Source: Macrostomum lignano (lineage: Eukaryota). Taken from it: a stretch of 64,000 nucleotides of DNA. Under the pieces are notes generated by a model. It saw nothing but the letters and a program-made list of their open reading frames with translations, made no database searches and was not told the DNA's origin. Where the stretch lies: assembly GCA_002269645.1 (NCBI GenBank), contig NIVC01000023.1:434001-498000 (forward strand), in the 5' to 3' direction. The position numbers and the translations under genes were made by a program. The stretch's first letter is position 1; every line of letters begins with the position of its first letter. This document shows, piece after piece, positions 18,953 through 63,374 of this stretch.

Positions 18953-19017
<65 letters not shown>

Positions 19018-19232
19018 TAGTGTCTGTCTGTCTGTCTGTCTGTCTGTCTGCCTTCCTGTCTGTCTGTCTGTCTGTCTGTCTGCCTTCCTGTCTTTCTGTC
19101 TGTCTGTCTGTCTGCCTTCCTGTCTTTCTGTCTGTCTGTCTGTCTGTCTGTCTGTGTGCCTTCCTGTCTGCCTGTCTGTCTGTCTGTCTGTGTCTGTCTG
19201 TGTCTGTCTGTCTGTCTGTATGCCTGCCTTCC

Positions 19233-19264
<32 letters not shown>

Positions 19265-19265
19265 C
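18467..19265 (+). repeat. (CTGT)n microsatellite
   Basis: About 800 bp of tetranucleotide repeat with variants. Explains the VCLS ORFs. Confidence 0.97.
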
Positions 19266-19897: not shown

Positions 19898-20965
19898 TCC
19901 TGTGTGTCACCTGTGTCACCTGTATCTCTTGTGTGTGTCACCTGTGTGTGTGTCCTGTGTGTGTCACCTATATCTCCTGTGTGTGTCACCTGTATCTCCT
20001 GTGTGTGTCACCTGTATCTCCTGTGTGTGTGTCACCTGTATCTCTTGTGTGTGTCACCTGTGTGTGTGTCCTGTGTGTGTCACCTATATCTCCTGTGTGT
20101 GTGTCACCTGTATCTCCTGTGTGTGCGTTACCTGTATCTGCTGTGTGTGTCACCTGTATCTCTTGTGTGTGTCACCTGTGTGTGTGTCCTGTGTGTGTCA
20201 CATATCTCCTGTGTGTGTCACCTGTATCTCCTGTGTGTGTCACCTGTATCTCCTGTGTGTGTGTCACCTGTATCTCTTGTGTGTGTCACCTGTGTGTGTG
20301 TCCTGTGTGTGTCACCTATATCTCCTGTGTGTGTGTCACCTGTATCTCCTGTGTGTGCGTCACCTGTATCTGCTGTGTGTGTGTCACCTGTATCTCTTGT
20401 GTGTGTCACCTGTGTGTGTGTCCTGTGTGTGTCACCTGTGTGTGTGTCCTGTGTGTGTCACCTATATCTCCTGTGTGTGTGTCACCTGTATCTCCTGTGT
20501 GTGCGTCACCTGTATCTGCTGTGTGTGTGTCACCTGTATCTGCTGTGTGTGTCACCTGTATCTCCTGTGTGTGTCACCTGTATCTGCTGTGTGTGTGTCA
20601 CCTGTATCTCCTGTGTGTGTGTCACCTGTATCTCCTGTGTGTGTGTCACCTGTATCTCCTGTGTGTGTCACCTGTATCTCCTGTGTGTGTCACCTGTATC
20701 TCCTGTGTGTGTCACCTGTATCTCCTGTGTGTGTGTCACCTGTATCTCCTGTGTGTGTGTCACCTGTATCTCCTGTGTGTGTGTCACCTGTATCTCCTGT
20801 GTGTGTGTCACCTGTATCTCCTGTGTGTGTGTCACCTGTATCTCCTGTGTGTGTGTCACCTGTATCTCCTGTGTGTGTGTCACCTGTATCTCCTGTGTGT
20901 GTCACCTGTATCTCATGTGTGTGTCACCTGTATCTCATGTGTGTCTCACCTGTATCTTATGTGTC
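19898..20965 (+). repeat. (GT)-containing minisatellite (GTGTCACCTGTATCTCCTGTGT, 22-24 bp)
   Basis: Tandem units with a variable number of GT dinucleotides. Explains ORFs 19864-19904. Confidence 0.95.
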
Positions 20966-33665: not shown

Positions 33666-34416
33666 GTGATCGTTATAATCTTGGATCTCAGGATACCTAA
33701 AGCAGATGAGTTAGTTTCAAGCTTTTATAGTAGTGGATGCTGTCATTGATGATGCGAAATATCAATGGCGAATCTCAGTAGATCTCGGCAGAAATTTTTG
33801 TTTAATTTTTAAGTTTTAAGCCAGAGTTTTCTTTAAAATCCGGGACACTCGTGGCTCTCCGTTTGGAAGTGAATTAACAAAAACTTCTGTCATGGTTTTT
33901 GACCGTTGAATAAACCTATACAATTCCTATGTGATATAATTGTCGTTCTAATAATTGAAGCCATAATAATACTTTTTAAATAGTTGAGAATATAGTGTCT
34001 ACATGTACTATATCTGGGTGTATGATAAAATCAATGTTAATTGTTTATTTGTTGTTCTTATTGTATATTTTTATATAATTTCATAGTAATTAGCGCAATA
34101 CATATATTTAAAGTAGCAGTCATTTTATAGTTTTTAATGAGTTTTTCTTGCTGAAAAACAGCTTGCTTATATATTACAATATTTTTTTAGTTTTTTGTCG
34201 TCAATGTGCTTTCTTATTATACAGTAGATACACAATAGATTTCTGTATATTATGTATACGTATGTACTTTTGTTATCGTATTTAAAATGTCGTTAAGCAT
34301 TTTGAAAATAATTTCTATAAACAAAGATGTATCTCTTTTATTTTGCTTTGTTCCTTCGATCTAAATCTAGAACGTTTTGTCTTTATTACTTTTTAAATTT
34401 CACCTGTTATCAATAG

Positions 34417-35317
34417 GATTTCAGTGTATGACCATGGGATTTCAGTGTATGACCATAGGATTTCAATGTATGACCATGGGATTTCAGTGTATGACCATGG
34501 GATTTTAGTGTATGACCATGGGATTTCAGTGTATGACCATAGGATTTCAGTGTATGACCATGGGATTTCAGTGTATGACCATGGGATTTCAATGTATGAC
34601 CATGGGATTTCAGTGTATGACCATGGGATTTCAGTGTATGACTATAGGATTTCAGTGTATGACCATGGGATTTCAGTGTATGACTATAGGATTTCAGTGT
34701 ATGACCATGGGATTTCAGTGTATGACCATGGGATTTCAGTGTATGACCATAGGATTTCAATGTATGACCATGGGATTTCAGTGTATGACCATGGGATTTC
34801 AGTGTATGACTATAGGATTTCAGTGTATGACCATGGGATTTCAGTGTGTGACCATGGGATTTCAGTGTATGACCATAGGATTTCAATGTATGACCATGGG
34901 ATTTCAGTGTATGACCATGGGATTTCAGTGTATGACCATGGGATTTCAGTGTATGACCATAGGATTTCAATGTATGACCATGGGATTTCAGTGTATGACC
35001 ATGGGATTTCAGTGTGTGACCATGGGATTTCAGTGTATGACCATAGGATTTCAATGTATGACCATGGGATTTCAGTGTATGACCATGGGATTTCAGTGTA
35101 TGACCATGGGATTTCAGTGTATGACCATGGGATTTCAGTGTATGACCATGGGATTTCAGTGTATGACCATGGGATGTCAGTTTATGACCATGGGATATCA
35201 GTGTATGACCATGGGATTTCAGTGTATGACCATGGGATTTCAGTGTATGACCATGGGATTTCAGTGTATGACCATGGGATTTCAGTGTATGACCATGGGA
35301 TTTCAGTGTATGACCAT
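34417..35317 (+). repeat. 21-bp minisatellite (TCAGTGTATGACCATGGGATT)
   Basis: About 43 units. Confidence 0.97.
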
Positions 35318-35488
35318 CGACTCAGGGAGTGGCAATTCTAGAAGCAAGACCTAGATAAGTTTTTAGCTTTCATTTATGTTGAAATGCCCTATTATTAATT
35401 AATATTTTTTCACATTGTTCCATTTCAGTCCTGAGACTTTTCACCTTAATTGAACTCATTATTTGTTGTATTTAATTGTGTTTTATAA

Positions 35489-39026
<3,538 letters not shown>

Positions 39027-40659: not shown

Positions 40660-41615
40660 TCTGACCCTACCTCCTACTCTCACCCTACCCTCACCTACTC
40701 TCACCCCCTAATCTCACCGTACCCTCACTTCTCAAACCCTAATCTCACCCTACCCTCACCTATTCTCACCCCCTAATCTCACCCTACCCTCACCTATTCT
40801 CACCCCCTAATCTCACCCTACTCTCACCTATTCTCACCCCCTAATCTCACCCTACCCTCACCTATTCTCACCCCCTAATCTCACCCTACCCTCACCTATT
40901 CTCACCCCCTTATCTCACCCTACTCTCACTTCTCACCCCCTTGTCTCACTCTAACCTCGCCTTATCTCACTCTACCCTCACCTACTCACATCCTGCCCTC
41001 ACCTACTCTCACTCTACCCTCACCTACTCTCACCCTACCCTCGCCTATTCTCACCCCCTAATCTCACCCTACCCTCACCTATTCTCACCCCCTTATCTCA
41101 CCCTACTCTCACTTCTCACCCCCTTGTCTCACTCTAACCTCACCTTATCTCACTCTACCCTCACCTACTCTCATCCTGCCCTCACCTACTCTCACCCTAC
41201 CCTCACCTACTCTCACCCTACCCTCGCCTATTCTCACCCCCTAATCTCACCCTACCCTCACCTATTCTCACCCCCTTATCTCACCCTACTCTCACTTCTC
41301 ACCCCCTTTTCTCACTCTAACCTCACCTTATCTCACTCTACCCTCACCTACTCTCATCCTGCCCTCACCTACTCTCACCCTACCCTCACCTACTCTCACC
41401 CTACCCTCGCCTATTCTCACCCCCTAATCTCACCCTACCCTCACCTATTCTCACCCCCTTATCTCACCCTACTCTCACTTCTCACCCCCTTGTCTCACTC
41501 TAACCTCACCTTATCTCACTCTACCCTCACCTACTCTCATCCTACCCTCACCTACTCTCACTCTACCCTCACCTACTCTCACTCTACCCTCACCTACTCT
41601 CACTCTACCCTCACT
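40660..41615 (+). repeat. CTCACC-based higher-order C-rich repeat
   Basis: Short CTCACC(C/T) units nested in a ~180-bp higher-order period. Explains ORF 40941. Confidence 0.92.
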
Positions 41616-41618
41616 TAC

Positions 41619-41719
41619 ACTCTTTCGTCGTGTCGCACATGCTGCTCAGTGAGATACTATGCTGATTCACCAAGCCAGCCTCACTCTCCACCCACATGTA
41701 CTTCCATCCGTAACCCTGA
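41619..41719 (-). other. Candidate isolated coding exon (QGYGWKYMWVESEAGLVNQHSISLSSMCDTTKE)
   Basis: cttatcag| acceptor and |GTAAGT donor. Only the phase 2-to-1 frame is open. Parent gene unknown. Confidence 0.4.
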
Positions 41720-42236
41720 CTGATAAGCGACAGTAGAAGTTCGTCGCGTCCCGAGAAGCGAAATTTGCAATTCTCCGTGAAGTCGCACCGCTGTTTGAGT
41801 TTGCGTCAATACGTCTCTAGTGATTCGATGAAGCTTTTATTTTCCTAGCAATTGATTACTAATTAATTTGGCTCACTTCTACAGACTACCTAAAAGCTTT
41901 CAAAGCAGAGAAAATATATAATTATGTTAAAATTGAATGCAAGACTAACGAAATTAACTATGCTTATTGAGTTGCGCAGCTCTTCTGGGACTAAGGATGG
42001 CTTTTATTCAGCGACTGTCTAACTAATTGGTTGATTTCTTATTTTTGCCATCAGGTAAAACTTAACCTTGTAATTTCTTATCAGCAGCATTGTTTGTAGG
42101 TTTCTGCATGCAAATCATTTTGGATTGTCATTATTGTCGGTTTCTTAAAATTTTTAAGTTCATATCTTGGGGTAAAGCATTACACCTGATAATCCAGATT
42201 TCTAGACTAACGGTACCAGCAACTCCCCAGTGAGCC

Positions 42237-43592
42237 ATGGCATCTCAGCAACTCCCCATTGAGTCAATTGGCATCTCAGCAACTCCCCCATTGAGTCAAT
42301 TGGCATCTCAGCAACTCCCCATTGAGTCAATTGGCATCTCAGCAACTCCCCCATTGAGTCAATTGGCATCTCAGCAACTCCCCATTGAGTCAATTAGCAT
42401 CTCAGCAACTCCCCCATTGAGTCAATTGGCATCTCAGCAACTTCCCATTGAGTCAATTGGCATCTCAGCAACTCCCCCATTGAGTCAATTGGCATCTCAG
42501 CAACTCCCCATTGAGTCAATTGGCATCTCAGCAACTCCCCCATTGAGTCAATTGGCATCTCAGCAACTCCCCCATTGAGTCAATTGGCATCTCAGCAACT
42601 CCCCCATTGAGTCAATTGGCATCTCAGCAACTCCCCATTGAGTCAATTGGCATCTCAGCAACTCCCCATTGAGTCAATTGGCATCTCAGCAACTCCCCCA
42701 TTGAGTCAATTGGCATCTCAGCAACTCCCCCATTGAGTCAATTGGCATCTCAGCAACTCCCCATTGAGTCAATTGGCATCTCAGCAACTCCCCATTGAGT
42801 CAATTGGCATCTCAGCAACTCCCCCATTGAGTCAATTGGCATCTCAGAAACTCCCCATTGAGTCAATTGGCATCTCAGCAACTCCCCATTGAGTCAATTG
42901 GCATCTCAGCAACTCCCCCATTGAGTCAATTGGCATCTCAGCAACTCCCCCATTGAGTCAATTGGCATCTCAGCAACTCCCCATTGAGTCAATTGGCATC
43001 TCAGCAACTCCCCCATTGAGTCAATTGGCATCTCAGCAACTCCCCATTGAGTCAATTGGCATCTCAGCAACTCCCCCATTGAGTCAATTGGCATCTCAGC
43101 AACTCCCCATTGAGTCAATTGGCATCTCAGCAACTCCCCATTGAGTCAATTAGCATCTCAGCAACTCCCCCATTGAGTCAATTGGCATCTCAGCAACTTC
43201 CCATTGAGTCAATTGGCATCTCAGCAACTCCCCATTGAGTCAATTGGCATCTCAGCAACTCCCCATTGAGTCAATTGGCATCTCAGCAACTCCCCCATTG
43301 AGTCAATTGGCATCTCAGCAACTCCCCATTGAGTCAATTGGCATCTCAGCAACTCCCCCATTGAGTCAATTGGCATCTCAGCAACTCCCCCATTGAGTCA
43401 ATTGGCATCTCAGCAACTCCCCCATTGAGTCAATTGGCATCTCAGCGACTCCCCCATTGAGTCAATTGGCATCTCAGCAACTCCCCCATTGAGTCAATTG
43501 GCATCTCAGCGACTCCCCCATTGAGTCAATTGGCATCTCAGCAACTCCCCCATTGAGTCAATTGGCATCTCAGCAACTCCCCATTGAGTCAA
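42237..43592 (+). repeat. 31/32-bp satellite (GGCATCTCAGCAACTCCCC(C)ATTGAGTCAATT)
   Basis: About 43 highly homogeneous units. Confidence 0.97.
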
Positions 43593-48295: not shown

Positions 48296-48945
48296 ACTGA
48301 TTGGAGATAAAATCAGCCACATATGTATGCTTCGGCACTTCGGCAGAGCCAATGCACAGTTAAATGAAATAGCAATTGTCTTTGCAGTCCCCCCTTGCAG
48401 TCAGCCAGGGTCAGAATGTACACACGCAGCCACTGATATTTTTTTCTCTCTTTGCACACTGCAGCCAGTATTGGGGCCTATACAGTGAAGAGACAAAGGT
48501 TGTGGCGCAATCATTTTTGGAATTGGAATTCAGCCAGTCAAGAATTCAATTTGGTGTGGCCTTCTATTAAAAGCATAGGGAGAACTCGTTTTTCGAATAT
48601 TTAATTCCTTTAGCATTGAAGCAGATAAAAGAAATTTAACCGTCTTTCTTCCAGATAATTGCAAATCTTTTGGCGAAAACCAAATTATTTGAATTATTTG
48701 AAAAAATACCAATTATTTGAACTTCATAAAAATATTGACTAAAAAACTCTTTAAATCCATTTATTAATAAATCCTTGCAGATGACCAAATCAAAAAGGTC
48801 TTGACCGGATTGGCGGCGCAATCATATATTTCCTATGTCACAGTTTATTTAACAAACAAAATAAAACAAACTCACGGCCATTTTAAAATTTTGGTCAGCG
48901 CTTGAGTTGTTTCATTCATTTATCGGCAGCTAATTATAAGCTCAC

Positions 48946-50366
48946 GGCAGTTGGTTCGCGTCGAACTCCAACTGATCGTCGAAACTTCGGCGTCGGCGGA
49001 TTCTGCGTTTTCGTCGACAGCATCCGGCGATGCCGTTGACGCAACAATGAATATTTCCAGGCAGCTCGATGCCGCGCTTGTAAACAGCCTCTTGATGAAG
49101 CGGCAGGTTGGAGTAGTCAGGTATCACAGGCGTGGATGATCGGTCTGGAGTGTTTTTGAGAGATTGGGAGAGTTGGAGACGAAAATGGGTTGCTTGTAGT
49201 TAAAGTAAAGGAATATCTCTACACCACCTATATGTACTAAAGGAATTGATAAGTTTTATACATGTAGTTAATTTGGGGAGAGCGTGTTAAGTGCAACTGA
49301 TAACAAGATAATAGGTGGTAGGAGTCAATGGCGCTACTGATAAAAGCAGGGTTGATGGCGTGGGGTGTTGGCTCAATGAACTTGGGGTTGGTATTGGCTC
49401 AATGAACTGGGGGTTGGGATGTTGGCTCAATGAACTGGGATTGGGCCGTGTTGGCTCAATGAACTGGGGTTGGGCCGTGTTGGCTCAATGAACTGGGGTT
49501 GGGCCGTGTTGGCTCAATGAACTGGGGTTGGGCCGTGTTGGCTCAATGAACTGGGTGGGGTGTTGGCTCAATGAACTGGGGGTTGGTATTGGCTCAATGA
49601 ACTGGGGGTTGGTATTGGCTCAATGAACTGGGGGTTGGTATTGGCTCAATGAACTGGGGGTTGGTATTGGCTCAATGAACTGGGGGTTGGTATTGGCTCA
49701 ATGAACTGGGGGTTGGGGTGTTGGCTCAATGAACTGGGGGTTGGGGTGTTGGCTCAATGAACTGGGGGTTGGTATTGGCTCAATGAACTGGGGGTTGGTA
49801 TTGGCTCAATGAACTGGGGGTTGGTATTGGCTCAATGAACTGGGGGTTGGTATTGGCTCAATGAACTGGGGGTTGGTATTGGCTCAATGAACTGGGGGTT
49901 GGGGTGTTGGCTCAATGAACTGGGTGGGGTGTTGGCTCAATGAACTGGGGTTGGTATTGGCTCAATGAACTGGGGGTTGGGGTGTTGGCTCAATGAACTG
50001 GGGGTTGGTATTGGCTCAATGAACCCGGGTTGGGGTGTTGGCTCAATGAACTTGGGTTGGGCCGTGTTGGCTCAATGAACTGGGTGGGGTGTTGGTTGCA
50101 TGAACTGAGTGGGGTGTTGGCTGAATGAACTGAGGTTGGGGTGTTGGCTCAATGAACTGGGGTTGGGGTGTTGGCTCAATGCTAAACAGTCTGCAACATA
50201 ATTGCATTTTAGCAAACGGACAAGGCATGCACCAATTTCAATTCAATCGCTCACCCTCCTGCTCAGGGTTGTCAAAGCTTGCAGCGGCCGAAGCTGCCAT
50301 CAGCACAGCCACAGCGGCAATGGTAGCCGAGGCGACAATCAGTTTAGTTATTACCCAGAGCTTCAT
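48946..50366 (-). CDS. Secreted prohormone/neuropeptide-like precursor (3' exon unresolved)
   Basis: Exon 50366-50255 (MKLWVITKLIVASATIAAVAVLMAASAAASFDNPEQE, donor G|GTGAGC) joins in phase 1 to exon 49144-48946 (pyrimidine tract ctccag|, donor CC|GTGAGC). Exon 2 encodes ..YKR-GIELPGNIHCCVNGIAGCC-RRKRRIRRRR-SFDDQLEFDANQLP. Confidence 0.8.
49365..50175 (+). repeat. 26-28-bp G-rich minisatellite (GGCTCAATGAACTGGGGGTTGGTATT) in the prohormone intron
   Basis: About 30 units. Confidence 0.95.
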
Positions 50367-51202
50367 TTTCTCTGCTAAGAATAAGCGCGCTTTAGTTAGC
50401 CACAAAGAATATTCTAATTATGATTTGTAGACTCAAGTTTGCTTATGATAAACTGCAGTGAGAGATTCGGCGAGTGCGAAAAAACGCAGATTTTATAGCA
50501 GCAAAATTTAATGAACAACGAAGCCAAAATCCAGTCAGCCAGTCAGCTACGAGTAGTTCTGTCCGCTTATTGTGCCACTAGAGACCGGTGGGGGAGTATT
50601 CGAGGAGCAGGAATCGAACAGTGACGATGAAAATGGATGTTTAAAAATCTGAAATGTTACGCCTGTCTGCATGTCAAACGCTTCCAAATCCCGGAATTCG
50701 ATGGATTCCCATGCGTGACGAATCAGAGCCACTGGCCAATCGTAGCGATACTGGTAGAAACAATTATATAATCAAATTACTTCTATATTACTTCTTTTCT
50801 ACTAATAGTAGAGTAGATTGCCTATTAAGTGAAAAAGTGAAAATCAAACGAAATGTACCGGTGTTAGGCTTTGCAATCTCCGTGCGCTTGCAGTCTCCGG
50901 CCGGAGATCGCAAGACGAATGTGACTCTGCTTTGCGATCTCCAGTCCCGGACAACGCAAGGCCTTGCGTTTTCCCTGATTTTGAGATCTCCGGGGTAGAA
51001 ATGAACATGAGCGGAGTACAGCCACGGGGCTAAAACTCTGCCAAATAATTACTGGTTGCATGTGCAGGGCCTTTAGCTCGTATATGATCTGTACACGGCC
51101 TTTATATGCAAACAGCTAATATATCTGTACCTAGCAGTGAGCTCTAGATGAATTACACAGATTGGGGTCCCAGGGGATAAAGGGGATAAAATGGGGATCT
51201 CA

Positions 51203-51436: not shown

Positions 51437-51900
51437 CGCCCAATACCAAATGTACGAGCGGACACGGTCGCTCGAGAACTGAAAAGCCTATTTGGCCTTT
51501 TTGGCTGGCCTCGCATTCTTCTGAGTGATCAAGGCAGGGAATTCTGCAATTCCATCATCGAGGCTTTGCTACAGGAGGGCCGGTACGGAAAGACGAGTAA
51601 CGAGTGCTTACCATCCTCAGACGAATGGACAAACTGAGAGGCTAAACCAAACGTGCCTCACCCTGCTTCGCAAGGTTTGCAACTCCCCAACTGACATTAA
51701 CTGGGATCGGCACCTGGACGCAATCCAACTTGCTTACAACAGCAGACGCAACTCAACGACTGTGGCTTCGCCTTTCAGTGCTGTTTTTGGCTTTGAGCCT
51801 CTGCTCGGAAGCGATGCGGCGGCTGCTCTCGGCCAGCCTACATCGGCTCCAGCATCAATGCAACGGCAATGGCTTGTAGAACTAATTCTGGTGACTAACC
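51437..51900 (+). pseudogene. Frameshifted Gypsy/Ginger-type DDE integrase core fragment
   Basis: One frame reads PIPNVRADTVARELKSLFGLFGWPRILLSDQGREFCNSIIEALLQE. After a +1 shift the next reads AGTERRVTSAYHPQTNGQTERLNQT..WDRHLDAIQLAYNS..SPFSAVFG. No RT, gag or LTR seen. Confidence 0.9.
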
Positions 51901-52374
51901 AATTGAACTAACTAATTAATTTAACTAACTACTAACTAGCTACGCACGTAATTTAACTAATTGACTGAAAACAAAAACAAAAGCTGCTTTTGGAATTTTT
52001 GACAATTTGGTATTTATTGCTTCTTTGCTTTGAAAACATTTACCTGACAAATCGTTCATTGCATTAGTTTTTCAACCTGCTTGTGACTTCCCGGGGGGGG
52101 GGGAGACTGCAAGTACCCCGGAGAACGCAAAGCATCCGGATACTTCACGATGCTTGGAATATCTGGGTGGAGATCGGAAGGCACTTGAACTATCTGGGCG
52201 GACAACACAAGACACGGATATCCGAAAGTATAACACCGGCATGTAAGTTTTTAGTTCGCTTTATCTGTTTTGCAGACGCCCCATTTACCAGCTAAAGTAC
52301 AAATTTGGTATGCACAAGGCCAACTACGAATATAATAACAGCTGAAACGTCCGGGAAGCCACATAACTCAGCAA

Positions 52375-52700
52375 CTAAAGATCTGGGAGGCTGGCTCAGC
52401 AACTGAGGACCTGGGAGACTGGTGGCCCAGCAACTGAGGATCTGGGAGGCTGGCCCAGCAACTAAAGATCTGGGAGGCTGGCCCAGCAACTGAGGATCTG
52501 GGAGGCTGGCCCAGCAACTGAGGATCTGGGAGGCTGGCCCAGCAACTAAAGATCTGGGAGGCTGGCCCAGCAACTGAGGATCTGGGAGGCTGGCCCAGCA
52601 ACTGAGGATCTGGGAGGCTGGCCCAGCAACTAAAGATCTGGGAGGCTGGCCCAGCAACTGAGGATCTGGGAGGCTGGCCCAGCAACTGAGGATGTGGGAG
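52375..52700 (+). repeat. 28-bp minisatellite (CTGGCCCAGCAACTGAGGATCTGGGAGG)
   Basis: About 11 units. Confidence 0.93.
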
Positions 52701-52959
52701 GCTGGCGATGTCCCAGTTTGCAACCGCTTGCGCACCAAAGTGCAGCAGCTGTTTTCAACAAATGAATGAGTCAGCACTTAGAGCACAATAAATCGAGTAC
52801 ATGGTTTTCTGCACATAACCACCTGCCAACGGAACAGCCTAGCAAAAATAAAAAAAGTTGAAGTATATTTATATTTACAACTTTATTGTCGAATGAAGGC
52901 GTGATCGGTCTTGATTTCTATGGATTGACCATCTGGCAAACAGACATGTACTGGTAGTA

Positions 52960-53830
52960 TAAGGTAGAAATAGACACAAAGGATACAAAGACACTTAAGT
53001 CGAAGAAATAAAGAAAAACCTAAAAAACAAAGACAACCCGAAACAGCTGGTACACAAACTGAAACGCAACTAGGACACACACATACACAACCAGGATAGA
53101 AACAGTCAGGACTCAACGAAAATCAGGATAGAAGGACACAAAAACGACCAGAACACACAGAGACACAAAGACTATCAGGACACACAGACACAAAGACAAC
53201 CAGGACACATACAGACACAAAGACAACCAGGACACACAGACACAAAGACAACCAGGACACACAGACACAAAGACAACCAGGACACACAGACAAAAAGACA
53301 ACCAGGACACACAGACACAAAGACAACCAGGACACACAGACACAAAGACAACCAGGACACAGACACAAAGACAACCAGGACACACAGACACAAAGACAAT
53401 CAGGACACACAGACACAAAGACAACCAGGACACACAGACACAAAGACAATCAGGACACACAGACACAAAGACAACCAGGACACACAGACACAAAGACAAC
53501 CAGGACACACAGACACAAAGACAACCAGGACACACAGACACAAAGACAACCAGGACACACAGACACAAAGACAACCAGGACACACAGACACAAAAACAAC
53601 CAGGACAGACAGACACAAAGACAACCAGGACACACAGACACAAAGACAACCAGGACACACAGACACAAAGACTACCAGGACACACAGACACAAAAACAAC
53701 CAGGACACACAGACACAAAGACAACCAGGACACAGACACAAAAACAACCAGGACACACAGACACAAAGACAACCAGGACACACAGACACAAAGACTACCA
53801 GGACAGACAGACACAAAGACAACCAGAGCA
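52960..53830 (+). repeat. 24/26-bp minisatellite (GACACAAAGACAACCAGGACACACA)
   Basis: About 30 units just downstream of the 1152-aa gene. Confidence 0.93.
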
Positions 53831-53916
53831 CATTCAAAAGAACCAACCACAGCAGGGCGAATAACAAAAGCGTAAAATCATCAGTTAGTAGCACTAGTAG
53901 TAGTGGTAAAAATGCG

Positions 53917-56900
53917 TCAAGCAGCCAGAAGGCAAACTGGAAATTTCTCAGTAACGAACAGAGTTTTCAACAGGGCCGGTCTCATTTTTAGAAACCGTTT
54001 CACTTGGCCAACAATAACGTCGCCAGGCCCCGGCTGGTCGGCGTTGATCCAGCGAACGGCGGATCGGGCGGCCGCCTGAGGCGACAGCGGCCCGACAATC
54101 ATTAGGCAGGCCAGGCAGCGACGGCGCAACGAACCAATTCTAGAGTCTTTGTTTCGATCAGCTGTTTTATCTAACAGCCGCTCAAGAAATGGAATCAACC
54201 GGCTGACAATCCAAGGCGGTTGAACGCCGCCTCCGCGGCACAGTTCGGCAATTGAACCCGGCTGAAGCAGATAATCTAATTCGTCGTCGTCAAGGCAACA
54301 ATCGGCGCTGTTATTATCGTCTCTATTATCAATAATAGCGGCTATCCCGGCATTAATCCGGTCTAAATAGCTCAACGGTTCGGCTGGCAAAGATTCGAGC
54401 ATGTCGATCCTGTGGGACAAGAAGAATGTCCAATCTATCACTGGATCGAGAGGCCAACCGTCCGGTATTGCGCTAGCAACCGCTCGAAACGCGGACGAAG
54501 TGTTCAAATCGCGAACAAAATCGTCGACAGGAAAAGAGCGCCGTTTCAATCGGCTGGCGGATTCGCCGCTGGGCGCCGCAGGCTGGTCGACCGTCTCGGA
54601 GTCGGGCGATCTGATCGGCGACAAGAGCGACGGCAAAACCTGTCGATTATTAATTGAACTTGCCACCGAGGCTTTGTCAAATTCGTCGTCTTCGTTAAAA
54701 TCGGCAATTGCCAGATTGCACGAAGCATTGTCGAAGTCTTCGCTATTTGTTGTGGAACAATTGGCAATTCGATGATGATGAGGATCGCTAGAAGCGGCAC
54801 TCGATGAAGCTGATGCAGTTGTTTTGACTCGGACTACACTTTCTTGTCTTTCTACAACCGTTTGAGTCGAATCTGTTGCTACTTCTGCTATGGAAAGTCT
54901 CGATTCGACAGGATCTTCTGCTGGATACTGAGCTTTTAGTTTTAGCTCAGTAGTATTGTTAGCATTTTGAAGTGTGACATCTTTTTCAGATGTGAAATCT
55001 TCGCTAAAAGAAGGTTCAATGAATTTTCTATTCTCATTGTGCAGTGAATCTTCCACAACCGTCACACTAAACGATTCATTTGAGTCTTCCATTGCATCAT
55101 TAACAGATGGTTCCTTAGCTTCTTCCACTGCGACAACAAACGAATCAGATGGTTCCTTAGCTTCTTCCACTGCGACAACAAACGAATCAGATGGTTCCTT
55201 AGCTTCTTCCACTGAGACAACAAACGAATCAGATGGTTCCTTAGCTTCTTCCACTGCAACAACAAACGAATCAGATGGTTCCTTAGCTTCTTCCACTGGG
55301 ACAACAAACGAATCAGATGGTTCCTTAGCTTCTTCCACTGAGACAACAAACGAATCAGATGGTTCCTTAGCTTCTTCCACTGAGACAACAAACGAATCAG
55401 ATGGTTCCTTAGCTTCTTCCACTGAGACAACAAACGAATCAGATGGTTCCTTAGCTTCTTCCACTGCAACAACAAACGAATCAGATGGTTCCTTAGCTTC
55501 TTCCACTGGGACAACAAACGAATCAGATGGTTCCTTAGCTTCTTCCACTGCGACAACAAACGAATCAGATGGTTCCTTAGCTTCTTCCACTGCAACAACA
55601 AACGAATCAGATGGTTCCTTAGCTTCTTCCACTGGGACAACAAACGAATCAGATGGTTCCTTAGCTTCTTCCACTGGGACAACAAACGAATCAGATGGTT
55701 CCTTAGCTTCTTCCACTGGGACAACAAACGAATCAGATGGTTCCTTAGCTTCTTCCACTGCGACAACAAACGAATCAGATGGTTCCTTAGCTTCTTCCAC
55801 TGCGACAACAACCGAATCAGATGGTTCCTTAGCTTCTTCCATAACAGCAGATTCCTTAGAATCTTCTACAGCAACATGTAAAACAGATGATTCCTCGTCT
55901 GATGTAACACTATCTGAATCCTCATTCTGCTCAACAATGGGCTCATCTGTCGTGGTGCCATCTGCATCCTGCACAATAGGCTCATCTGTTGCAGTGCCAT
56001 GTGCATCCTGCAAAACAATAGGGTCATCTGTTGCAGTGCCATCTGCATCCTGCAAAACAATGGGTTGATCTGTTGCAGTGCCATCTGCATCCTGCAAAAC
56101 AATGGGCTCATCTGTTGCAGTGCCATCTGCATCCTGCAAAACAATGGGTTGATCTGTTGCAGTGCCATCTGCATCCTGCACAATGGGCTCATCTGTTGCA
56201 GTGCCATCTGCATCCTGCACAATGGGCTCATCTGTTGCAGTGCCACCTGCATCCTGCACAATGGACTCATCTGTTGCAGTGCCTTCTGCATCCTGCACAA
56301 TGCGCTTATCTGTTGCAGTGCCATCTGCATTCTGCACAATGGGCTCATCTGTTGAAGTGCCATCTGCATTCTGCACAACAATAGGCTTATCTGTTGCAGT
56401 GCCATTTGCATCCTCATCCTGCAGGACAATAGTGACATCAGACGATGCTTCATCTCGACATTCTGCACTTATTTCAATAATGCCAGACGAAAGTTTCGCA
56501 TTGGACCTCGTGTTATAGGCAAACGACTTGATCGGCAAAGGAGGCTCTAATGGACGCCGTCTTTTGCTTTTAGCAGCGCCGCTTCCATTGCCTTCCTCTT
56601 CGCTGGATGTAGCATCCAGATCTACCCGGTGGGAATGCCTTCGCCGAATAACGCCAGTTTTTGGAGACTGGGATGTTTTAGACTTAGAGAAGTCAGCACC
56701 GCAACTAGCCGAAAGACTCTGTCTGTAGCGCTGATGTTTATTTCTACGGCTGCAATCTTTGTCGTACATTTGAAGCGTTCTTCTTGGACGCTGATTAACA
56801 GAAGACAGGCACTGCTCTATAGACAACTTTCTATTAGCAGCAGTCTTTGCTGTTTCATCGGAAACAATCACAACGGATTGATTGGAGGAGCACAGAGGCT

Positions 56901-57375
56901 TTTGTACATGCATTTGAGCTTCACTGTGAGGATTGGAGTTCTTAGGCCTGGTGGATTCTTCCGCCTGAGGTTGCGGTTTATCCTCATCATTATCCTCATC
57001 GCTAGAAGAGGTGGCGTCCAAATCAACACGCCTAGGACGCTTAGGTTGAACTGCTGACACCCCAGGATCGGTGGCGCGGCTGCTTGTTCGTTTAGACGCG
57101 CGACGTTTCGGCTGCTTCAACTGACTCAATTCTAGTCGAGCCTCCGCTAATTCGTGCCGAGTTCGCTGCAGGTTAGCTTCGGTTAATGACAGGGCAGCTT
57201 TCAATGCTGAGCAACGATTAGCCGATTCTCTAGCTCTGGCCAGTTCGGCTTCCAGCGAACTGACCCGGCGGCACTGTCTAGCATAGGCTCGATGAAGCTG
57301 GTCGCATTCAACTAGGAGAGACTTGGCTCTGAATAGGGCTCGGACCAAGTCTTCGCGACTGGCGTCGGACTGCAT
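53917..57375 (-). CDS. 1152-aa single-exon protein: N-terminal coiled coil, acidic tandem repeats, helical C-terminal domain; possibly ICE1 (little elongation complex)
   Basis: Uninterrupted ORF with non-repetitive ends and an acceptor (ttttcag) 16 nt upstream of the ATG. N-terminal LVRALFRAKSLLVECDQLHRAYARQC resembles remembered ICE1 YVEALITLKQKIINTDNLLTEYQKKC. The CDS call is strong; the ICE1 identity is tentative (~0.5). Confidence 0.85.
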   Translation of the reverse strand: MQSDASREDLVRALFRAKSLLVECDQLHRAYARQCRRVSSLEAELARARESANRCSALKAALSLTEANLQRTRHELAEARLELSQLKQPKRRASKRTSSRATDPGVSAVQPKRPRRVDLDATSSSDEDNDEDKPQPQAEESTRPKNSNPHSEAQMHVQKPLCSSNQSVVIVSDETAKTAANRKLSIEQCLSSVNQRPRRTLQMYDKDCSRRNKHQRYRQSLSASCGADFSKSKTSQSPKTGVIRRRHSHRVDLDATSSEEEGNGSGAAKSKRRRPLEPPLPIKSFAYNTRSNAKLSSGIIEISAECRDEASSDVTIVLQDEDANGTATDKPIVVQNADGTSTDEPIVQNADGTATDKRIVQDAEGTATDESIVQDAGGTATDEPIVQDADGTATDEPIVQDADGTATDQPIVLQDADGTATDEPIVLQDADGTATDQPIVLQDADGTATDDPIVLQDAHGTATDEPIVQDADGTTTDEPIVEQNEDSDSVTSDEESSVLHVAVEDSKESAVMEEAKEPSDSVVVAVEEAKEPSDSFVVAVEEAKEPSDSFVVPVEEAKEPSDSFVVPVEEAKEPSDSFVVPVEEAKEPSDSFVVAVEEAKEPSDSFVVAVEEAKEPSDSFVVPVEEAKEPSDSFVVAVEEAKEPSDSFVVSVEEAKEPSDSFVVSVEEAKEPSDSFVVSVEEAKEPSDSFVVPVEEAKEPSDSFVVAVEEAKEPSDSFVVSVEEAKEPSDSFVVAVEEAKEPSDSFVVAVEEAKEPSVNDAMEDSNESFSVTVVEDSLHNENRKFIEPSFSEDFTSEKDVTLQNANNTTELKLKAQYPAEDPVESRLSIAEVATDSTQTVVERQESVVRVKTTASASSSAASSDPHHHRIANCSTTNSEDFDNASCNLAIADFNEDDEFDKASVASSINNRQVLPSLLSPIRSPDSETVDQPAAPSGESASRLKRRSFPVDDFVRDLNTSSAFRAVASAIPDGWPLDPVIDWTFFLSHRIDMLESLPAEPLSYLDRINAGIAAIIDNRDDNNSADCCLDDDELDYLLQPGSIAELCRGGGVQPPWIVSRLIPFLERLLDKTADRNKDSRIGSLRRRCLACLMIVGPLSPQAAARSAVRWINADQPGPGDVIVGQVKRFLKMRPALLKTLFVTEKFPVCLLAA

Positions 57376-57479
57376 TGGTGAGTTTCGACGACTGAAAATT
57401 GGAATTAAATATGAATCATACTGGAAATCTAATTACTTTATTTGATAGTCTATAGATGCCTATGCACCTTTATCCAGAT

Positions 57480-58105
57480 TACTACAAAGACTCTTACCGG
57501 ATTTCGACAAAGACCCTTTACGGATTATCCACTGCTACAAAGATTTCCACTGACTCCTACCGGATTTCTACAAAGACCTTTACCGAATTTCTACAAAGAC
57601 CTTTACCGGATTTATACAAAGACCTTTACCGAATTTCTACAAAGACCTTTACCGGATTTATACAAAGACCTTTACCGGATTTATACAAAGACCTTTACCG
57701 GATTTATACAAAGACCTTTACCGGATTTCTACAAAGACCCTTGCTGGATTTCTACAAGGACCTTTCCCGGATTTCTACAAAGACCTTTACCGGATTGCTA
57801 CAAAGACCTTTCCCGGATTTCTACAAATACCTTTTCCGGATTTATACAAAGACCTTTCCCGGTTTGCTATAAATACCTTTTTCGGATTTCTACAAAGACC
57901 TTTCCCGGATTTCTACAAATATCTTTACCGGATTTCTACAAAGACCCTTACGGCATTTCTAAAAAGACCTTTCCCGTATTTCTACAAAGACCCTTGCTGG
58001 TTTTCTACAAGGACCTTTCCCGGATTTCTACAAAGACCTTTACCGAATTTCTAAAAAGCCATTTACCTGGATTTCTACAAAGACATAAACCAAATTTCTA
58101 CAAAG
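57480..58105 (+). repeat. 23-bp minisatellite (CCGGATTTCTACAAAGACCTTTA)
   Basis: About 25 degenerate units. Confidence 0.92.
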
Positions 58106-58879
58106 ACTACATAAAATAATATACAACAATAAAAAATAAAGATCGCGAAGTACGCTCGTACTTTAACTGACAAAAAATTCGCCCCGTTTAATTTTAGATA
58201 CAAAAAAGCATTATTTAATTTATAGGGTCACACTAACAGTAGTATCGAAAGCAAATAACTAATATTAATTGTTAAGTACGATGCTATACAATTATGACTG
58301 CAAGCAGCATACGCAGTAAACCTGACGATTGATAATGAGCATAACAATTGTTAGAATGTTTCACAACGTAGCGAGTGAATCAAGCCACTGAAGACTTGCT
58401 GTTCATTGTCTATGGCCCAAAAAGGGGGTCAAACAGCTAGCATAAATGAAAAAGTCAAGAAAAATGTAAAATCAGAAGGGTGCAATTCATAACAGCATTT
58501 TGGCTACGAGTGGTGCCTGTGCCTCAGGAAGCTTCGATCGAATCTAGCTCGCATTTTTTGTTATAAAAATCATAAATCAATTTTACTACTTATAATTAAA
58601 GGTTAAAATTTAAACGTTGGTAAATAAAAACGCTAAAAAAAACTGTGCACTACTATAAGCTATATATACAACTCGACTGAATTAACAGTAGTAATGCGCG
58701 GATTTTCTAACAATTGTTTTCACCCTTTATTGGCATTATTACAATTTTTTACCAAGCTATTTCCATCCGAATAGGTAAAAAATCTCTAAGTAAGTAATGA
58801 TGATTAGTCAGAGACAGATTTATGAATGGCTGTGGTGGCCTGTCTGTCTTATAGTGTCTGCCGTAGTGAATGCATATTT

Positions 58880-59745
58880 TAATGTGTCTGTGTGTCATCG
58901 ACATGTTCTATGTGTGTCTGTGTGTCCATAGACATGTTCTATGTGTGTCTGTGTGTCATAGCCATGTTCTATGTGTGTCTGTGTGTCATAGCCATGTTAT
59001 ATGTGTGTCTGTGTGTCATAGCCATGTTCTATGTGTGTCTGTGTGTCATAGACATGTTCTATGTGTGTCTGTCTGTCATAGACATGTTCTATGTGTGTCT
59101 GTGTGTCATAGCCATGTTCTATGTGTGTCTGTGTGTCATAGTCATGTTCTATGTGTGTCTGTGTGTCATAGCCATGTTCTATGTGTGTCTGTGTGTCATA
59201 GCCATGTTCTATGCGTGTCTGTGTGTCATAGCCATGTTCTATGTGTGTCTGTGTGTCATAGACATGATCTATGTGTGTCTGTGTGTCATAGACATGTTCT
59301 ATGTGTCTGTGTGTCATAGCGATGTTCTATGTGTGTCTGTGTGTGATAGCGATGTTCTATGTGTGTCTGTGTGTGATAGACATGTTCTATGTGTGTCTGT
59401 GTGTCATAGCCATGATCTATGTGTGTCTGTGTGTCATAGACATGTTCTATGTGTGTCTGTGTGTCATAGACATGTTCTATGTGTGTCTGTGTGTGATAGA
59501 CATGTTCTATGTGTGTCTGTGTGTCATAGCCATGATCTATGTGTATCTGTGTGTCATAGACATGTTCTATGTGTGTCTGTGTGTCATAGCCATGTTCTAT
59601 GTGTGTCTGTCTGTCATAGACATGTTCTGTGTGTGTCTGTGTGTGATAGACATGTTCTATGTGTGTCTGTGTGTCATAGACATGTTCTATGTGTGTCTGT
59701 GTGTCATAGCGATGTTCTATGTGTGTCTGTGTGTTTGTCTGTCTG
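58880..59745 (+). repeat. 30-bp minisatellite (GTGTGTCTGTGTGTCATAGCCATGTTCTAT)
   Basis: About 28 units. Confidence 0.95.
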
Positions 59746-59784
59746 CCTCCTTATTAACTGATAATAATAATTATTAATAAAGAT

Positions 59785-62261
59785 CTAAGCAGCCCCACTC
59801 TCGGTCAACAGTTTCACTTCGTACGCTCTAACCAATAGCCGGAATCTGCCGTCGGCTGGCAGCCGAAACGACGCGCTGGGCACCAAGCCGACAGTGTTGG
59901 AGCCGACACGGAGCGGGGCGCAGGTGCAAATGAAACAGCCGGCCTGACTCAGCGGCATCTGGCGCACGTTGTTCAGCCAAACCTCGCGCACTGAGCACCT
60001 GCCCCGGAGTCGAACCAACGGCGCCGCTGTAGCTTCGGCTCCGGTGTTGAACACGGCGTTGCCTAGCAACAGTACGCAAGGCAGCGACGGCAGCCGATCG
60101 GCAATGTCGAATTGAACAGACAGGCCAGGCCTGGGAAGAATGTGCAAACGGCCGACTGGGGCGAGCAGCCGAGCTGAGCTACCGAGAGCTGATTGGGCGC
60201 AGTCGGCCAGAGCCTGCGAAACGGCGTCGCAGTGACGCTGCAGCAAGCAGAGCAGCTCGCCTGCCAGTGGGCAGCTTCTGCGAGTGACAATGGGGAGGCG
60301 TGCGAATTCCAAGAACTGGGGTGATTTCCAAGAACTGGGGTGATTTCCAAGAACTGGGGTGATTTCCAAGAACTGGGGTGATTTCCAAGAACTGGGGTGA
60401 TTTTCAAGAAATGGGTAAGGGCGATTTCTAAGAACTGGGGTGATTTCCAAGAAATGTGTAAGGGCGATTTCTAAGAACTGGGGTGATTTCCAAGAACTGG
60501 GGTGATTTCCAAGAAATGGGTAAGGGCGATTTCTAAGAACTGGGGTACTTTCCAAGAACTGGGGTGATTTCCAAGAAATGGGTAAGGGCGATTTCTAAGA
60601 ACGGGGGTAATTTCCAAGAACTGGGGTGATTTCCAAGAAATGGGTAAGGGCGATTTCTAAGAACTGACGGTGATTTCTAAGAACTGAGGGGCAATTTTTT
60701 AGAGCAGGGGGTGATTTCTAAGAACTGAGGGTGATTTCTAAGAACTGAGGGTGATTTCTAATAACCGGGGGTGATTTCTAAAAATTGAGGGAGATTTCTA
60801 AGAAAGGGGAGGTGCAATTTCTAAGAACTGGGGATGACCTGGAACCAAATTCTAAGAAGGCTATTTTTCGCGTCTTAGGGTTAGGAGAGACTATTGTGGT
60901 ATCATTATAACAAAAATCTCGGCTTGGCTCTGCTCGTGCAATTAACGCCCAGCTTGAGGCCCAAACCCCCAAGCCACAGTGAAGTGTACATGCATAACGG
61001 TAAATAAAGTCAGGGGCCGCTGTACACTCGCATGTACCTAGGAAAGAAAGATAATCACCTGGCAACCACCATGGGATCTTTGAATAGCTGCTGCTGCTGG
61101 TCATTTCCAGCAGCTGTCCGGTGACCAGCAGCATCACCGGATGAAGAAGCTGACAAAGCCGATGCGGCAGGCAGCTGACACCAGGCGTTAACGGCACAGC
61201 CGTGCTGCAGCAGCAGTCGAACTGCTGCCACATTGCCCTGCCTCAGAGCGGCAGTCAGCGCCGTTTCTCCATTCCGCGCCTCATCGGCCCAATTCAGATC
61301 GCAAGCGCCAGCAGCCGATGAAGCTGGCGAGTGCAGCAGGCGAATCAAATCGCCCAGAGAGTTGGCCTCTACAGCCGCAATCAGCCTGGAAGAAGCTTTC
61401 GAAGGCGAAGAGGACAGACAGTCGGGCAGAGAAGCAACAGTCGGGCAATGGTCCAGTGCCGGGAGGGAGTCCAAGAATCTGTCTAATTCGCCTCCGGATT
61501 TGTAATACAAATTTGTGAGCGATGCGGCGGAATCATTGACAGCTGGATGGGATGCGACTGCTGTGAAAGTAGAGCTGTCGGATGCGCTTCGGAATTTGTT
61601 GAACAGACCCTGACTGTCCGACTGGCTGTTTTGCCGCTCCTGCTGCTCCTGTTGCTGCTGCTGTTGGTCTTTTTTCGGAAAATCGACCGCTGTCTGAGGT
61701 GCTTCCGCCTAACAAGAGGCGGCATGTGTTTTGGATTAACGAAATAATGAGATTGACCTGTCTGTCTGTTTGCCTGTATTTCTGTCTGTCTGTCTGTATT
61801 TGTCTCTCCATGTCCGTCTTATCTGTCTGTCCGTCTGTCTGTCAACCTGCCTGCCTGCCTGCCAGCCTGTCTGTCTGTCTGTCTTAGTGCCTGTCTGTCT
61901 GTCTGCCTGCCTGTCTCTCTGTCTACCTGCCTGTCTCTCTGTCTGTCTGCCTGTATGTCTTAGTGTCTGTCTACGAGATGACACAAAAACTTACCGCCTG
62001 CGGCTGTTTCTTATTTTTTCGTTTCTGCTGCCGCTTCTTCTGCCGCTGTTCACTGGTGAACGCTTGCAGAGCAGCCTCGCAGCCAATCAGGTTACTCCTT
62101 GGCTCCCACGTGTTCCAATCGTCCCCAAAGCCCTTCCATTTGATCAAATAGCGCATCGTATGGCCCCGACCCTTCACCCGCAGAATCTTTTCAACTTCGT
62201 ATTCGTTCTCGTGCTCGTTGGCGGCTGGCCAATCGCCGGCCGCTACCGATGGCTGGTCCAT
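59785..62261 (-). CDS. MPHOSPH8: MPP8 / M-phase phosphoprotein 8 orthologue (chromodomain + ankyrin repeats + C-terminal beta domain), ~469 aa
   Basis: Exons 62261-61995, 61708-61059 and 60277-59785 (phases 0 and 2; GCG|GTAAGT, gttag|, AG|GTGATT, cgcag|). Chromodomain YEVEKIL..YLIKWKGF..TWEP. Ankyrin GETALTAALRQGNVAAVRLLLQHGCAVN. C-terminal VRLRGRCSVREVWLNNVRQMPL and RLLVRAYEVKL match remembered human ARLCGPCSVQAVVLNDKFQLPV and KLLIGAYRVQL. Confidence 0.9.
60307..60860 (+). repeat. 19-bp minisatellite (CCAAGAACTGGGGTGATTT) in MPP8 intron 2
   Basis: Tandem units with 39-bp higher-order variants. Confidence 0.93.
61758..61970 (+). repeat. (CTGT)n microsatellite in MPP8 intron 1
   Basis: Degenerate tetranucleotide run. 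Confidence 0.9.
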
Positions 62262-62424
62262 GCAAAATGATTTCTTTCTCTTAGTACAAAATCTGCTCGG
62301 TTCAGCTGTCACCCCAGAGAATCAACAGGAGACTGCGGATGAAGCATACAGATTGACTCAGGAAAGAATCATTATTATAAAATAGATGAGAACAGAGGAA
62401 AGCTATTTGAAAGGCTGTTTTGGC

Positions 62425-63025
62425 AGACTGTGGTTTCTACAGCCTGTTTTTGTAGTTTCTACAGCCTGTATTTGTGGTTTCTACAGCCTGTATTTGTGGT
62501 TTCTACAGCCTGTATTTGTGGTTTCTACAGCCTGTATTTGTGGTTTCTACAGCCTGTATTTGTGGTTTCTACAGCCTGTATTTGTGGTTTCTACAGCCTG
62601 TATTTGTGGTTTCTACAGCCTGTATTTGTGGTTTCTACAGCCTGTTTTTGTGGTTTCTACAGCCTGTATTTGTGGTTTCTACAGCCTGTTTTTGTGGTTT
62701 CTACAGCCTGTATTTGTGGTTTCTACAGCCTGTATTTGTGGTTTCTACAGCCTGTTTTTGTGGTTTCTACAGCCTGTATTTGTGGTTTCTACAGCCTGTA
62801 TTTGTGGTTTCTACAGCCTGTATTTGTGGTTTCTACAGCCTGTATTTGTGGTTTCTACAGCCTGTATTTGTGGTTTCTACAGCCTGTATTTGTGGTTTCT
62901 ACAGCCTGTATTTGTGGTTTCTACAGCCTGTTTTTGTGGTTTCTACAGCCTGTATTTGTGGTTTCTACAGCCTGTTTTTGTGGTTTCTACAGCCTGTATT
63001 TGTGGTTTCTACAGCCTGTTCTTGT
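62425..63025 (+). repeat. 22-bp minisatellite (GGTTTCTACAGCCTGTATTTGT)
   Basis: About 27 units. Confidence 0.96.
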
Positions 63026-63374
63026 GATTTCCACAGCCTGTTTTGGGAGCTGTACTGCTAGGGTGTTTTGTACAATTATTAAACTACTGTCTTTGAACTG
63101 TAACAGCATAAAAAGCTTAAGATCAATAAAAGAAAGAGACAGACTGGCAATATTATCTGCGCAAATTCTGCTACATTTTGCGGTAATGAAAATAATATAA
63201 TTATAATAATACTACCAGAGTAAGAATAAAAAAGTACCAAAACAGATCTAAATTAATCTGCAAGTTATTAATAATTAAACAGTTCAATTACAAATATTCA
63301 TACAGATAAGGACAAAGAAAAACTTCGAGTCATACAGTTACAGATAAGGCAAAATTGGGTTGAATAACGAAATA

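Follow-up and report, generated by a model that had tools for sequence, protein, structure and literature searches.

A two-exon gene of Macrostomum lignano encoding a candidate precursor of a 19-residue CC-x6-CC peptide

Precursors of peptides released by subtilisin-type convertases and carboxypeptidase have a standard anatomy, in which a hydrophobic N-terminus and a variable acidic spacer precede Lys-Arg, after which come the short conserved peptide, several Arg/Lys residues in a row and a variable tail. Allatostatin-C has a characteristic ring and C-terminal motif, which in insects reads ...CYFNPISCF. To our knowledge, searches for flatworm neuropeptides have leaned on amidation motifs, missing non-amidated disulfide-bridged peptides. 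Flatworm neuropeptide sets are, moreover, incompletely sampled (PMC13551398). The framework V peptides of cone snails pair their cysteines I-III and II-IV, and some act on G-protein-coupled receptors (GPCRs), including the somatostatin-3 receptor (PMC4278219). A preliminary description of a 64,000-nucleotide (nt) stretch of DNA from the flatworm Macrostomum lignano (assembly GCA_002269645.1, contig NIVC01000023.1, positions 434,001 to 498,000 of the forward strand; this whole stretch is termed the window) had proposed that it holds a hidden prohormone gene for a 19-amino-acid (aa) peptide, GIELPGNIHCCVNGIAGCC, with four Cys arranged as CC-x6-CC. The computational analysis described here indicated that the gene is real and transcribed in M. 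lignano and that it encodes a 104-aa precursor of a presumably secreted peptide. The product is read, with a probability of about 0.6, as the precursor of a 19-aa secreted peptide that is processed by convertases and most likely serves in signalling, as a neuropeptide or hormone.

Gene structure and annotation

The gene lies on the minus strand and has two exons, 50366..50255 joined to 49144..48942, which give an in-frame coding sequence (CDS) of 315 nt and a 104-aa product. Exon 1 starts with the ATG at 50366 and contributes 112 coding nt ending in ...CAG GAG G, after which the donor GTGAGC begins. Exon 2 has its first base at 49144, next to an acceptor reading ...CTCCAG, its last sense codon extending to 48945 and its TGA at 48944..48942, slightly beyond the lower limit of 48946 given in the preliminary description. 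Translation of the spliced CDS yields MKLWVITKLIVASATIAAVAVLMAASAAASFDNPEQEDRSSTPVIPDYSNLPLHQEAVYKRGIELPGNIHCCVNGIAGCCRRKRRIRRRRSFDDQLEFDANQLP, followed by the stop, with the layout MKLWVITKLIVASATIAAVAVLMAASAAASFDNPEQEDRSSTPVIPDYSNLPLHQEAVYKR-GIELPGNIHCCVNGIAGCC-RRKRRIRRRR-SFDDQLEFDANQLP. Splicing thus gives exactly the protein that had been described, with a signal-like N-terminus, an acidic spacer, KR, the peptide, RRKRRIRRRR and an acidic tail, and the CC-x6-CC peptide without an amidation Gly is present in the spliced translation. The GTG-started fragment seen previously corresponds to a 61-aa mechanical open reading frame (ORF) at 48942..49127. The intron is filled with a tandem repeat, as had been reported (Table 1), and this repeat is probably ordinary M. 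lignano repeat DNA with no part in the coding function; tandem and simple repeats account for ~15% of the genome (PMC5730564). An AATAAA motif downstream of the stop codon is the likely polyadenylation signal (Table 1).

The 104-aa product was residue-for-residue identical to two GenBank entries from M. lignano, PAA52423.1 and PAA93639.1, each listed as "hypothetical protein". Their GenBank names are BOX15_Mlig010892g1 and BOX15_Mlig031427g1, either of which may be the copy on NIVC01000023.1, and the GenBank CDS span on this contig, relative to which the window is in reverse orientation, equals 50366..48942 of the window. The gene is, therefore, not hidden as first thought; it is annotated in the public record and only unnamed. 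Annotation of this assembly in GenBank used transcript assemblies from RNA sequencing (RNA-seq) only, generated with StringTie/TACO and as a de novo transcriptome, with ORFs called by TransDecoder and no ab initio prediction (PMC5730564). As the spliced CDS matches a GenBank model built from transcripts only, the 50255/49144 junction of the preliminary description is transcript supported, this support deriving from the annotation method. A homeologue with 96% identity, Mlig010892g2, is present on another contig, and homeologous copies are expected in M. lignano, the genome of which is recently polyploid (PMC5730564). Comparison of the homeologue loci gave an identity of 99.0% for exon 2 versus 93.5-98.6% for the adjacent intron, a contrast that has little power to detect selection.

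A longer model of the same locus is found in UniProt/WormBase as A0A1I8HXG2, a protein of 202 aa labelled "Transmembrane protein". Its pieces in the window are 51036..50845, 50372..50256 and 39019..38909 (minus strand), such that an upstream exon is added, and its donor is a GTGAG overlapping the stop codon (CC/GTGAGC) that is joined to an exon ~10 kb downstream. This 202-aa model was rejected for the window locus, where the distant 3' exon has an in-frame stop. A further acceptor, ...TTATTCTTAG, is located 9 nt before the ATG and could be a real splice site of the 5' untranslated region or a trans-splice site.

A paralogue and the pattern of conservation

A HMMER scan of 1.84 billion representative proteins (E <= 0.001) detected only one further relative, the M. 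lignano gene Mlig027086 (phmmer E 3.2e-8; pairwise BLASTP E 7e-14), which has three genomic copies. The product of this gene, MRLTGLLALLSVLGTALSAAQQLDEQQLRQQKPMPDAELLTDLIEKR-GVELAGDMYCCVNGIPGCC-RRRRRR-SAPG..., shares with the window protein the block KR–G[IV]EL[PA]G[ND][IM][HY]CCVNGI[AP]GCC–RR[KR]RR, in which 19 of 26 residues are identical and all four Cys are kept. Between the peptides themselves, GIELPGNIHCCVNGIAGCC and GVELAGDMYCCVNGIPGCC, identity is 13 of 19 residues. The basic sites bracketing GIELPGNIHCCVNGIAGCC, KR before residue 62 and RRKRR after residue 80, are both kept in Mlig027086, and the Cys/dibasic pattern that had been singled out in the window gene is thus conserved in a relative. 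Beyond the block the two proteins are essentially unalignable, with identities of 9/37 in the signal region, 6/26 in the spacer and 8/47 in the tail. Since conservation centres on the peptide and its cleavage sites while the spacers are free to vary, these comparisons give good support to an architecture of the prohormone type.

The gene plan is also common to both loci. An exon for the putative signal peptide is followed by a phase-1 intron within an Asp codon (G/AC in the window gene, G/AT in Mlig027086) and by one second exon, which encodes the spacer, peptide, basic sites and tail. In Mlig027086, exon 1, encoding the signal peptide, ends in ...CTC G/GTGAGC, and the 553-nt intron ends in ...CCCTCAG and is filled with tandem repeats unrelated to those of the window gene. 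The 19 peptide codons exhibit ~8 synonymous and 6 non-synonymous differences, equivalent to ~1.33 synonymous substitutions per synonymous site (dS) and ~0.15 non-synonymous substitutions per non-synonymous site (dN), values which, given the few codons, are indicative. The excess of dS over dN in these codons indicates that the duplication is old and that purifying selection has acted on the peptide from then on. The many silent differences inside the block exclude a recent gene-conversion event there. Near-identical homeologues of the window gene or of Mlig027086 differ from each other by few amino acids, none of which is in the core.

These results bear on whether the ORF could have arisen by chance, or be non-functional, in a transcribed and repeat-rich region, its likeness to a prohormone being coincidental. 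The protein is short, has no known domain (Pfam) and has relatives only within M. lignano, and the surrounding tandem repeats create many spurious ORFs, all of which would fit such an origin. However, a second locus, for which synonymous divergence is saturated, retains, all in frame, the peptide with its four Cys as well as the KR and the poly-Arg, and has the same intron phase, and the ORFs are intact in all three homeologous copies of the window gene and likewise in those of Mlig027086. A coincidence of this kind is considered extremely unlikely, a spurious ORF being effectively excluded by the paralogue.

A word-indexed search of 5.8 billion proteins, performed with a single sequence and with a 4-sequence profile, detected M. 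lignano sequences only, namely, the homeologues and the paralogue. The protein collections include the annotated proteomes of many parasitic flatworms and leave out un-annotated flatworm genomes and Macrostomum transcriptomes; annotation often misses small precursors, which limits the finding of relatives in M. lignano only. A scan of metagenome proteins for the pattern gave 143 matches, of which 0 were confirmed. The DNA pattern CC-x-NG-xx-G-CC-RR had 27 matches in metagenomes, all of them out-of-frame chance occurrences on bacterial-type contigs, with nearby stops and without KR.

The paralogue differs from the window gene in having two extra Cys-containing segments past RRRRRR (contig NIVC01002013.1, locus piece 6624..6901; residues 73-115). 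One of these, SAPGADEAQEKLRAACSCC, again has CC at its end and is followed by RRR, while the other, SALSSPSPCCLACRQLAHQLG, ends in Gly-stop and hence may be amidated. The Mlig027086 precursor has ten Cys in total and may give additional peptides or a disulfide-linked multi-chain product.

Predicted processing, possible functions and genomic surroundings

The N-terminus of the window protein resembles a signal peptide, with MKLWVITK as the n-region, a hydrophobic core rich in Ala, Val and Ile, and small residues, ...ASAAAS, that offer candidate cleavage sites for signal peptidase at about residues 26-30. In a heuristic n-h-c analysis, the N-end was positive and the core hydrophobic, and small residues suited the (-3,-1) positions at several sites within residues 24-30. 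The signal peptide of Mlig027086 is short and classical, comprising 19-20 residues (MRLTGLLALLSVLGTALSA with the cut before A). In the proposed mechanism, the hydrophobic N-terminal segment would mediate entry into the secretory pathway and would then be removed, a subtilisin-type proprotein convertase (PC2 or furin-like) would cut after Lys60-Arg61 and within RRKRRIRRRR, and a carboxypeptidase would remove the basic residues, resulting in release of the 19-residue GIELPGNIHCCVNGIAGCC. As there is no Gly after the last Cys, no amidation is expected. The peptide has an average mass of 1873.2 Da when reduced, or ~1869 Da with two disulfides, and a net charge of -1. Its adjacent Cys pairs would form two disulfides across the six-residue V-N-G-I-A-G loop, within which is an Asn-Gly turn motif, giving a small, rigid, non-amidated peptide; by analogy with the framework V peptides, the pairing may be I-III/II-IV. 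The released peptide would act outside the cell on a receptor, most likely as a neuropeptide or hormone. Secretion and cleavage, like the disulfide pattern, the cell type and the target, are inferred from the sequence. A PC2 homologue of M. lignano (RNA815_2403.2) is expressed in the nervous system and is essential for post-embryonic development (PMC4490696), indicating that processing machinery is present in this species.

No Pfam family, the conotoxin and insulin families included, matched the 104-aa protein at E <= 10, and no relative of the family profile was detected in the PDB at the same threshold. AlphaFold2 modelling with the 4-sequence alignment gave a predicted local distance difference test (pLDDT) score of 49, with nothing ordered beyond an N-terminal helix. 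That these searches and this model gave neither a domain nor a fold is to be expected of a precursor destined for cleavage and not of a folded domain.

A different possibility is that the chain is left uncut, as a small protein, either secreted or anchored in the membrane (type II), in which the Arg block and Cys pairs work in the intact chain, either binding polyanions or metals or forming a membrane-proximal motif. In the window copy, the hydrophobic segment spans ~21 residues, the longer UniProt model bears a transmembrane label and the basic run is longer than is needed for cleavage. The paralogue, however, has a cleavable signal peptide, and the KR is invariant while the spacer and tail diverge freely. 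Consecutive Arg/Lys residues in proteins of the secretory pathway are efficient furin/PC substrates, which also argues against an intact chain. Furthermore, a folded domain is not predicted, and the UniProt model is stitched together with distant exons, one with an in-frame stop in the window. Function as an uncut protein is considered very unlikely. A transmembrane or palmitoylated juxtamembrane motif, suggested by CC beside poly-Arg, was rejected because the segment before it lacks the length and the apolar character of a membrane helix.

Processing and disulfide formation could equally occur in a gland, where the peptide would be a defensive or predatory toxin-like product, an antimicrobial peptide or a component of the seminal fluid made by a reproductive gland. 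In the antimicrobial version, the Arg-rich stretch would stay on, being neutralised in the precursor by the acidic spacer and tail. The charge layout of the precursor, ~-5 over the whole spacer or pro-region, +9 in the very basic block and -4 in the tail, is like that of many cationic defence-peptide precursors, and the apparent restriction of the family to one lineage is typical of fast-evolving effector genes. Against a gland product, the paralogues keep a neutral-to-acidic 19-mer in a sequence-specific manner (13/19) and not by charge alone, and a dN/dS of ~0.1 speaks against the diversifying selection that is usual in toxins and seminal proteins. M. lignano is not known to have a venom apparatus. 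The CC-x6-CC arrangement matches the framework V conotoxin pattern (CC, 4-6 residues, CC; I-III/II-IV; PMC4278219), and many small secreted gland proteins are expressed by M. lignano (PMC5977470), both of which favour a gland product. The gene identifiers were absent from the supplements of a seminal-fluid in situ screen and of positional RNA-seq, a weak counterargument in view of files that may be incomplete or use other identifiers. A gland product is, on these grounds, rather unlikely but a serious alternative. A neuroendocrine signal is preferred because a neutral peptide is conserved in sequence-specific fashion and dN/dS is low.

Several points weigh against a signalling prohormone. With ~21 residues, the h-region in the window copy is long and is readable as a signal anchor, and the nine Arg/Lys among ten residues, more than cleavage would require, may serve some separate function. 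The dN/dS estimate is based on 19 codons, and the family has been seen in only one species, M. lignano, within the protein collections searched. GIELPGNIHCCVNGIAGCC is non-amidated and unlike any known neuropeptide. Finally, Mlig010892, Mlig031427 and Mlig027086 are absent from the supplements of Grudniewska 2018, Wudarski 2017, Brand 2020 and Weber 2018.

With these points taken into account, the peptide is a good candidate, as yet unproven, for a signalling or toxin-like peptide not described before, put forward from sequence data of one species. A more specific proposal would be that the two genes form a hitherto undescribed family of flatworm peptides that serve as endogenous signals, have a "CC-loop-CC" double-disulfide ladder and act on a peptide GPCR of the worm; this is regarded as quite doubtful. 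If true, it would provide a non-venom, endogenous example of the CC-loop-CC scaffold, known so far mainly from the framework V venom peptides of cone snails, as well as a new pair of ligand and receptor in a flatworm accessible to genetic work. Should the peptide be a signal of any kind, the gain would be an orphan family of peptides and, outside venoms, a compact scaffold with two disulfides, while a gland or defence peptide would be a new effector all the same. The analysis also illustrates that "hypothetical protein" entries of the M. lignano genome conceal peptide precursors and that comparison of paralogues within a species can reveal them. M. lignano is amenable to transgenesis (PMC5730564) and RNA interference (PMC4490696) and the gene is small with a clear predicted product; hence, direct testing is feasible.

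Table 1. Features of the peptide gene and of other parts of the window
Feature	Position	Strand	Description
Exon 1 coding part	50255..50366	-	Residues 1-37 and first base of Asp38; signal-peptide-like segment and start of acidic spacer
Intron	49145..50254	-	1110 nt, GTGAGC...CTCCAG, phase 1, splits Asp38 codon G/AC
Intronic tandem repeat	49360..50193		26-bp unit, ~31 copies, 186-bp higher-order period
Exon 2 start	49080..49144	-	Remainder of acidic, poorly conserved spacer DRSSTPVIPDYSNLPLHQEAVY
Lys60-Arg61	49074..49079	-	Predicted N-terminal proprotein-convertase site; invariant in paralogue
Predicted mature peptide GIELPGNIHCCVNGIAGCC	49017..49073	-	19 aa, residues 62-80, CC-x6-CC
Polybasic RRKRRIRRRR	48987..49016	-	Residues 81-90; predicted C-terminal convertase/furin-type sites; first five align with paralogue RRRRR
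Acidic C-terminal tail SFDDQLEFDANQLP and TGA (48944..48942)	48942..48986	-	Net charge -4; poorly conserved in paralogue
Candidate polyadenylation signal AATAAA	48844..48849	-	~93 nt past stop; sequence motif only
1152-aa ORF	53917..57375	-	Uninterrupted; no Pfam domain
Two adjoining ORFs	31352..32840	+	Cytosolic 5'-nucleotidase family PF05761, E 2e-13 and 1.5e-23, successive profile parts
RING-H2 ORF	22881..23294	-	137 aa; RING-H2 zinc finger PF13639, E 7e-12
Chromodomain ORF	61971..62312	-	PF00385, E 2e-14
Integrase-core fragment	51525..51911	+	Weak rve_3 match, E 0.002, below Pfam cutoff; ~1.2 kb upstream of peptide gene
Ankyrin-repeat ORF	61055..61510	-	Ank_2, E 1e-7

The upstream neighbour of the peptide gene on the same strand is the 1152-aa ORF (Table 1), which contains two long internal tandem arrays, one of ~15 units (...PIVQDADGTATDE...) and one of ~18 units (...VEEAKEPSDSFVV...). 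Gene models matching its position in the homeologous loci encode 1097, 1052 and 799 aa, and the repeat copy number hence seems to vary. The two PF05761 ORFs probably belong to a single gene that is interrupted by either a short intron or a frameshift, and the RING-H2 ORF is likely to be a small gene or exon of the E3 ubiquitin-ligase type. The chromodomain ORF and the integrase-core fragment look like remnants of long terminal repeat retrotransposons. Long tandem repeats are found elsewhere in the window, for example at 11260..13315, 18439..21110, 34410..35354, 40941..42578, 52292..53894, 57442..59777 and 62386..63200, and give rise, in several frames of either strand, to numerous overlapping "ORFs" 150-400 aa long; these are minisatellite artefacts and not genes.

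Comparison with known systems

The preliminary description had noted a likeness to allatostatin-C. The two share the C-x6-C spacing of the inner Cys and, as predicted for GIELPGNIHCCVNGIAGCC, release of a single peptide copy at basic sites. Allatostatin-C, however, has two Cys and GIELPGNIHCCVNGIAGCC has four, and no significant similarity was detected outside M. lignano in the protein collections searched. Membership of the allatostatin-C/somatostatin family was rejected, since CVNGIAGC lacks both F-N-P-[IV]-S and a C-terminal Phe in addition to being part of a four-Cys peptide; of the earlier comparison only the spacing remains, the ring and C-terminal motif being absent. An insulin/relaxin A chain, suggested by the GI..CC start, was also rejected, as there is no upstream Cys or B chain, the pattern is CC-x6-CC and not CC-x3-C-x8-C, and no Pfam insulin match was obtained.

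Several lophotrochozoan precursors from annelids and molluscs, namely, CCWamide/agatoxin-like, CLCCY, CCRFamide and CCAamide, resemble the flatworm precursor, with its signal-like N-terminus, in that a signal peptide and a spacer lacking conservation precede a basic site and a C-terminal peptide with Cys. The CCWamide/agatoxin-like peptides have eight conserved Cys and an amidated aromatic end, as opposed to four Cys in the flatworm peptide; CLCCY has six or more Cys in a knottin-like arrangement; and CCRFamide and CCAamide have other Cys patterns and are amidated. Kinship with these four was rejected, as none has the CC-x6-CC block or sequence similarity. Novelty of the peptide, as suggested by the preliminary description, held in so far as no match was found by Pfam, in the PDB, among the CC-named peptides or through the motif strings, which were absent from the literature searched, as was the gene identifier from the main texts. 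A 2026 review lists no such peptide (PMC13551398). The peptide is probably undescribed, the classic flatworm catalogues (McVeigh 2009; Koziol 2016) lying outside this comparison.

The framework V conotoxins of the Conus T-superfamily, such as TxVA, PVA and tau-CnVA, are like GIELPGNIHCCVNGIAGCC in having two adjacent Cys pairs, with 6 residues between them in the flatworm peptide (range 4-6), and, as predicted for the flatworm peptide, in being short mature peptides cut at a basic site from a precursor with a signal and a pro-region. They differ in that GIELPGNIHCCVNGIAGCC has nine residues before the first CC and an unrelated loop, VNGI[AP]G, and its host is a flatworm and not a cone snail. 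What defines a conotoxin superfamily is its conserved signal sequence, and the flatworm protein had no conotoxin match in Pfam at E <= 10. No homology of the precursor to conotoxins emerged either, as no relative outside M. lignano was found among the 1.84 and 5.8 billion proteins. The proposed framework V likeness therefore stands for the cysteine pattern but not for kinship, and this shared pattern is most likely convergent. The action of some framework V peptides on a somatostatin receptor makes the receptor idea reasonable to try but is not evidence for it.

GIELPGNIHCCVNGIAGCC matches none of the neuropeptide families checked. Unlike most described flatworm neuropeptides, which are linear and C-terminally amidated, it has four Cys and no amidation Gly. 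Its precursor nevertheless resembles the PC2-cut prohormones of flatworms and other invertebrates, such as those of the planarian npp/spp genes, in being small, with a signal-like N-terminal segment on its own exon, poorly conserved acidic spacers and a short conserved peptide between KR and RR/KR sites. It is plausible, from these likenesses, that the two M. lignano genes represent an apparently lineage-restricted family within the known class of convertase-processed, disulfide-bridged secreted peptides.

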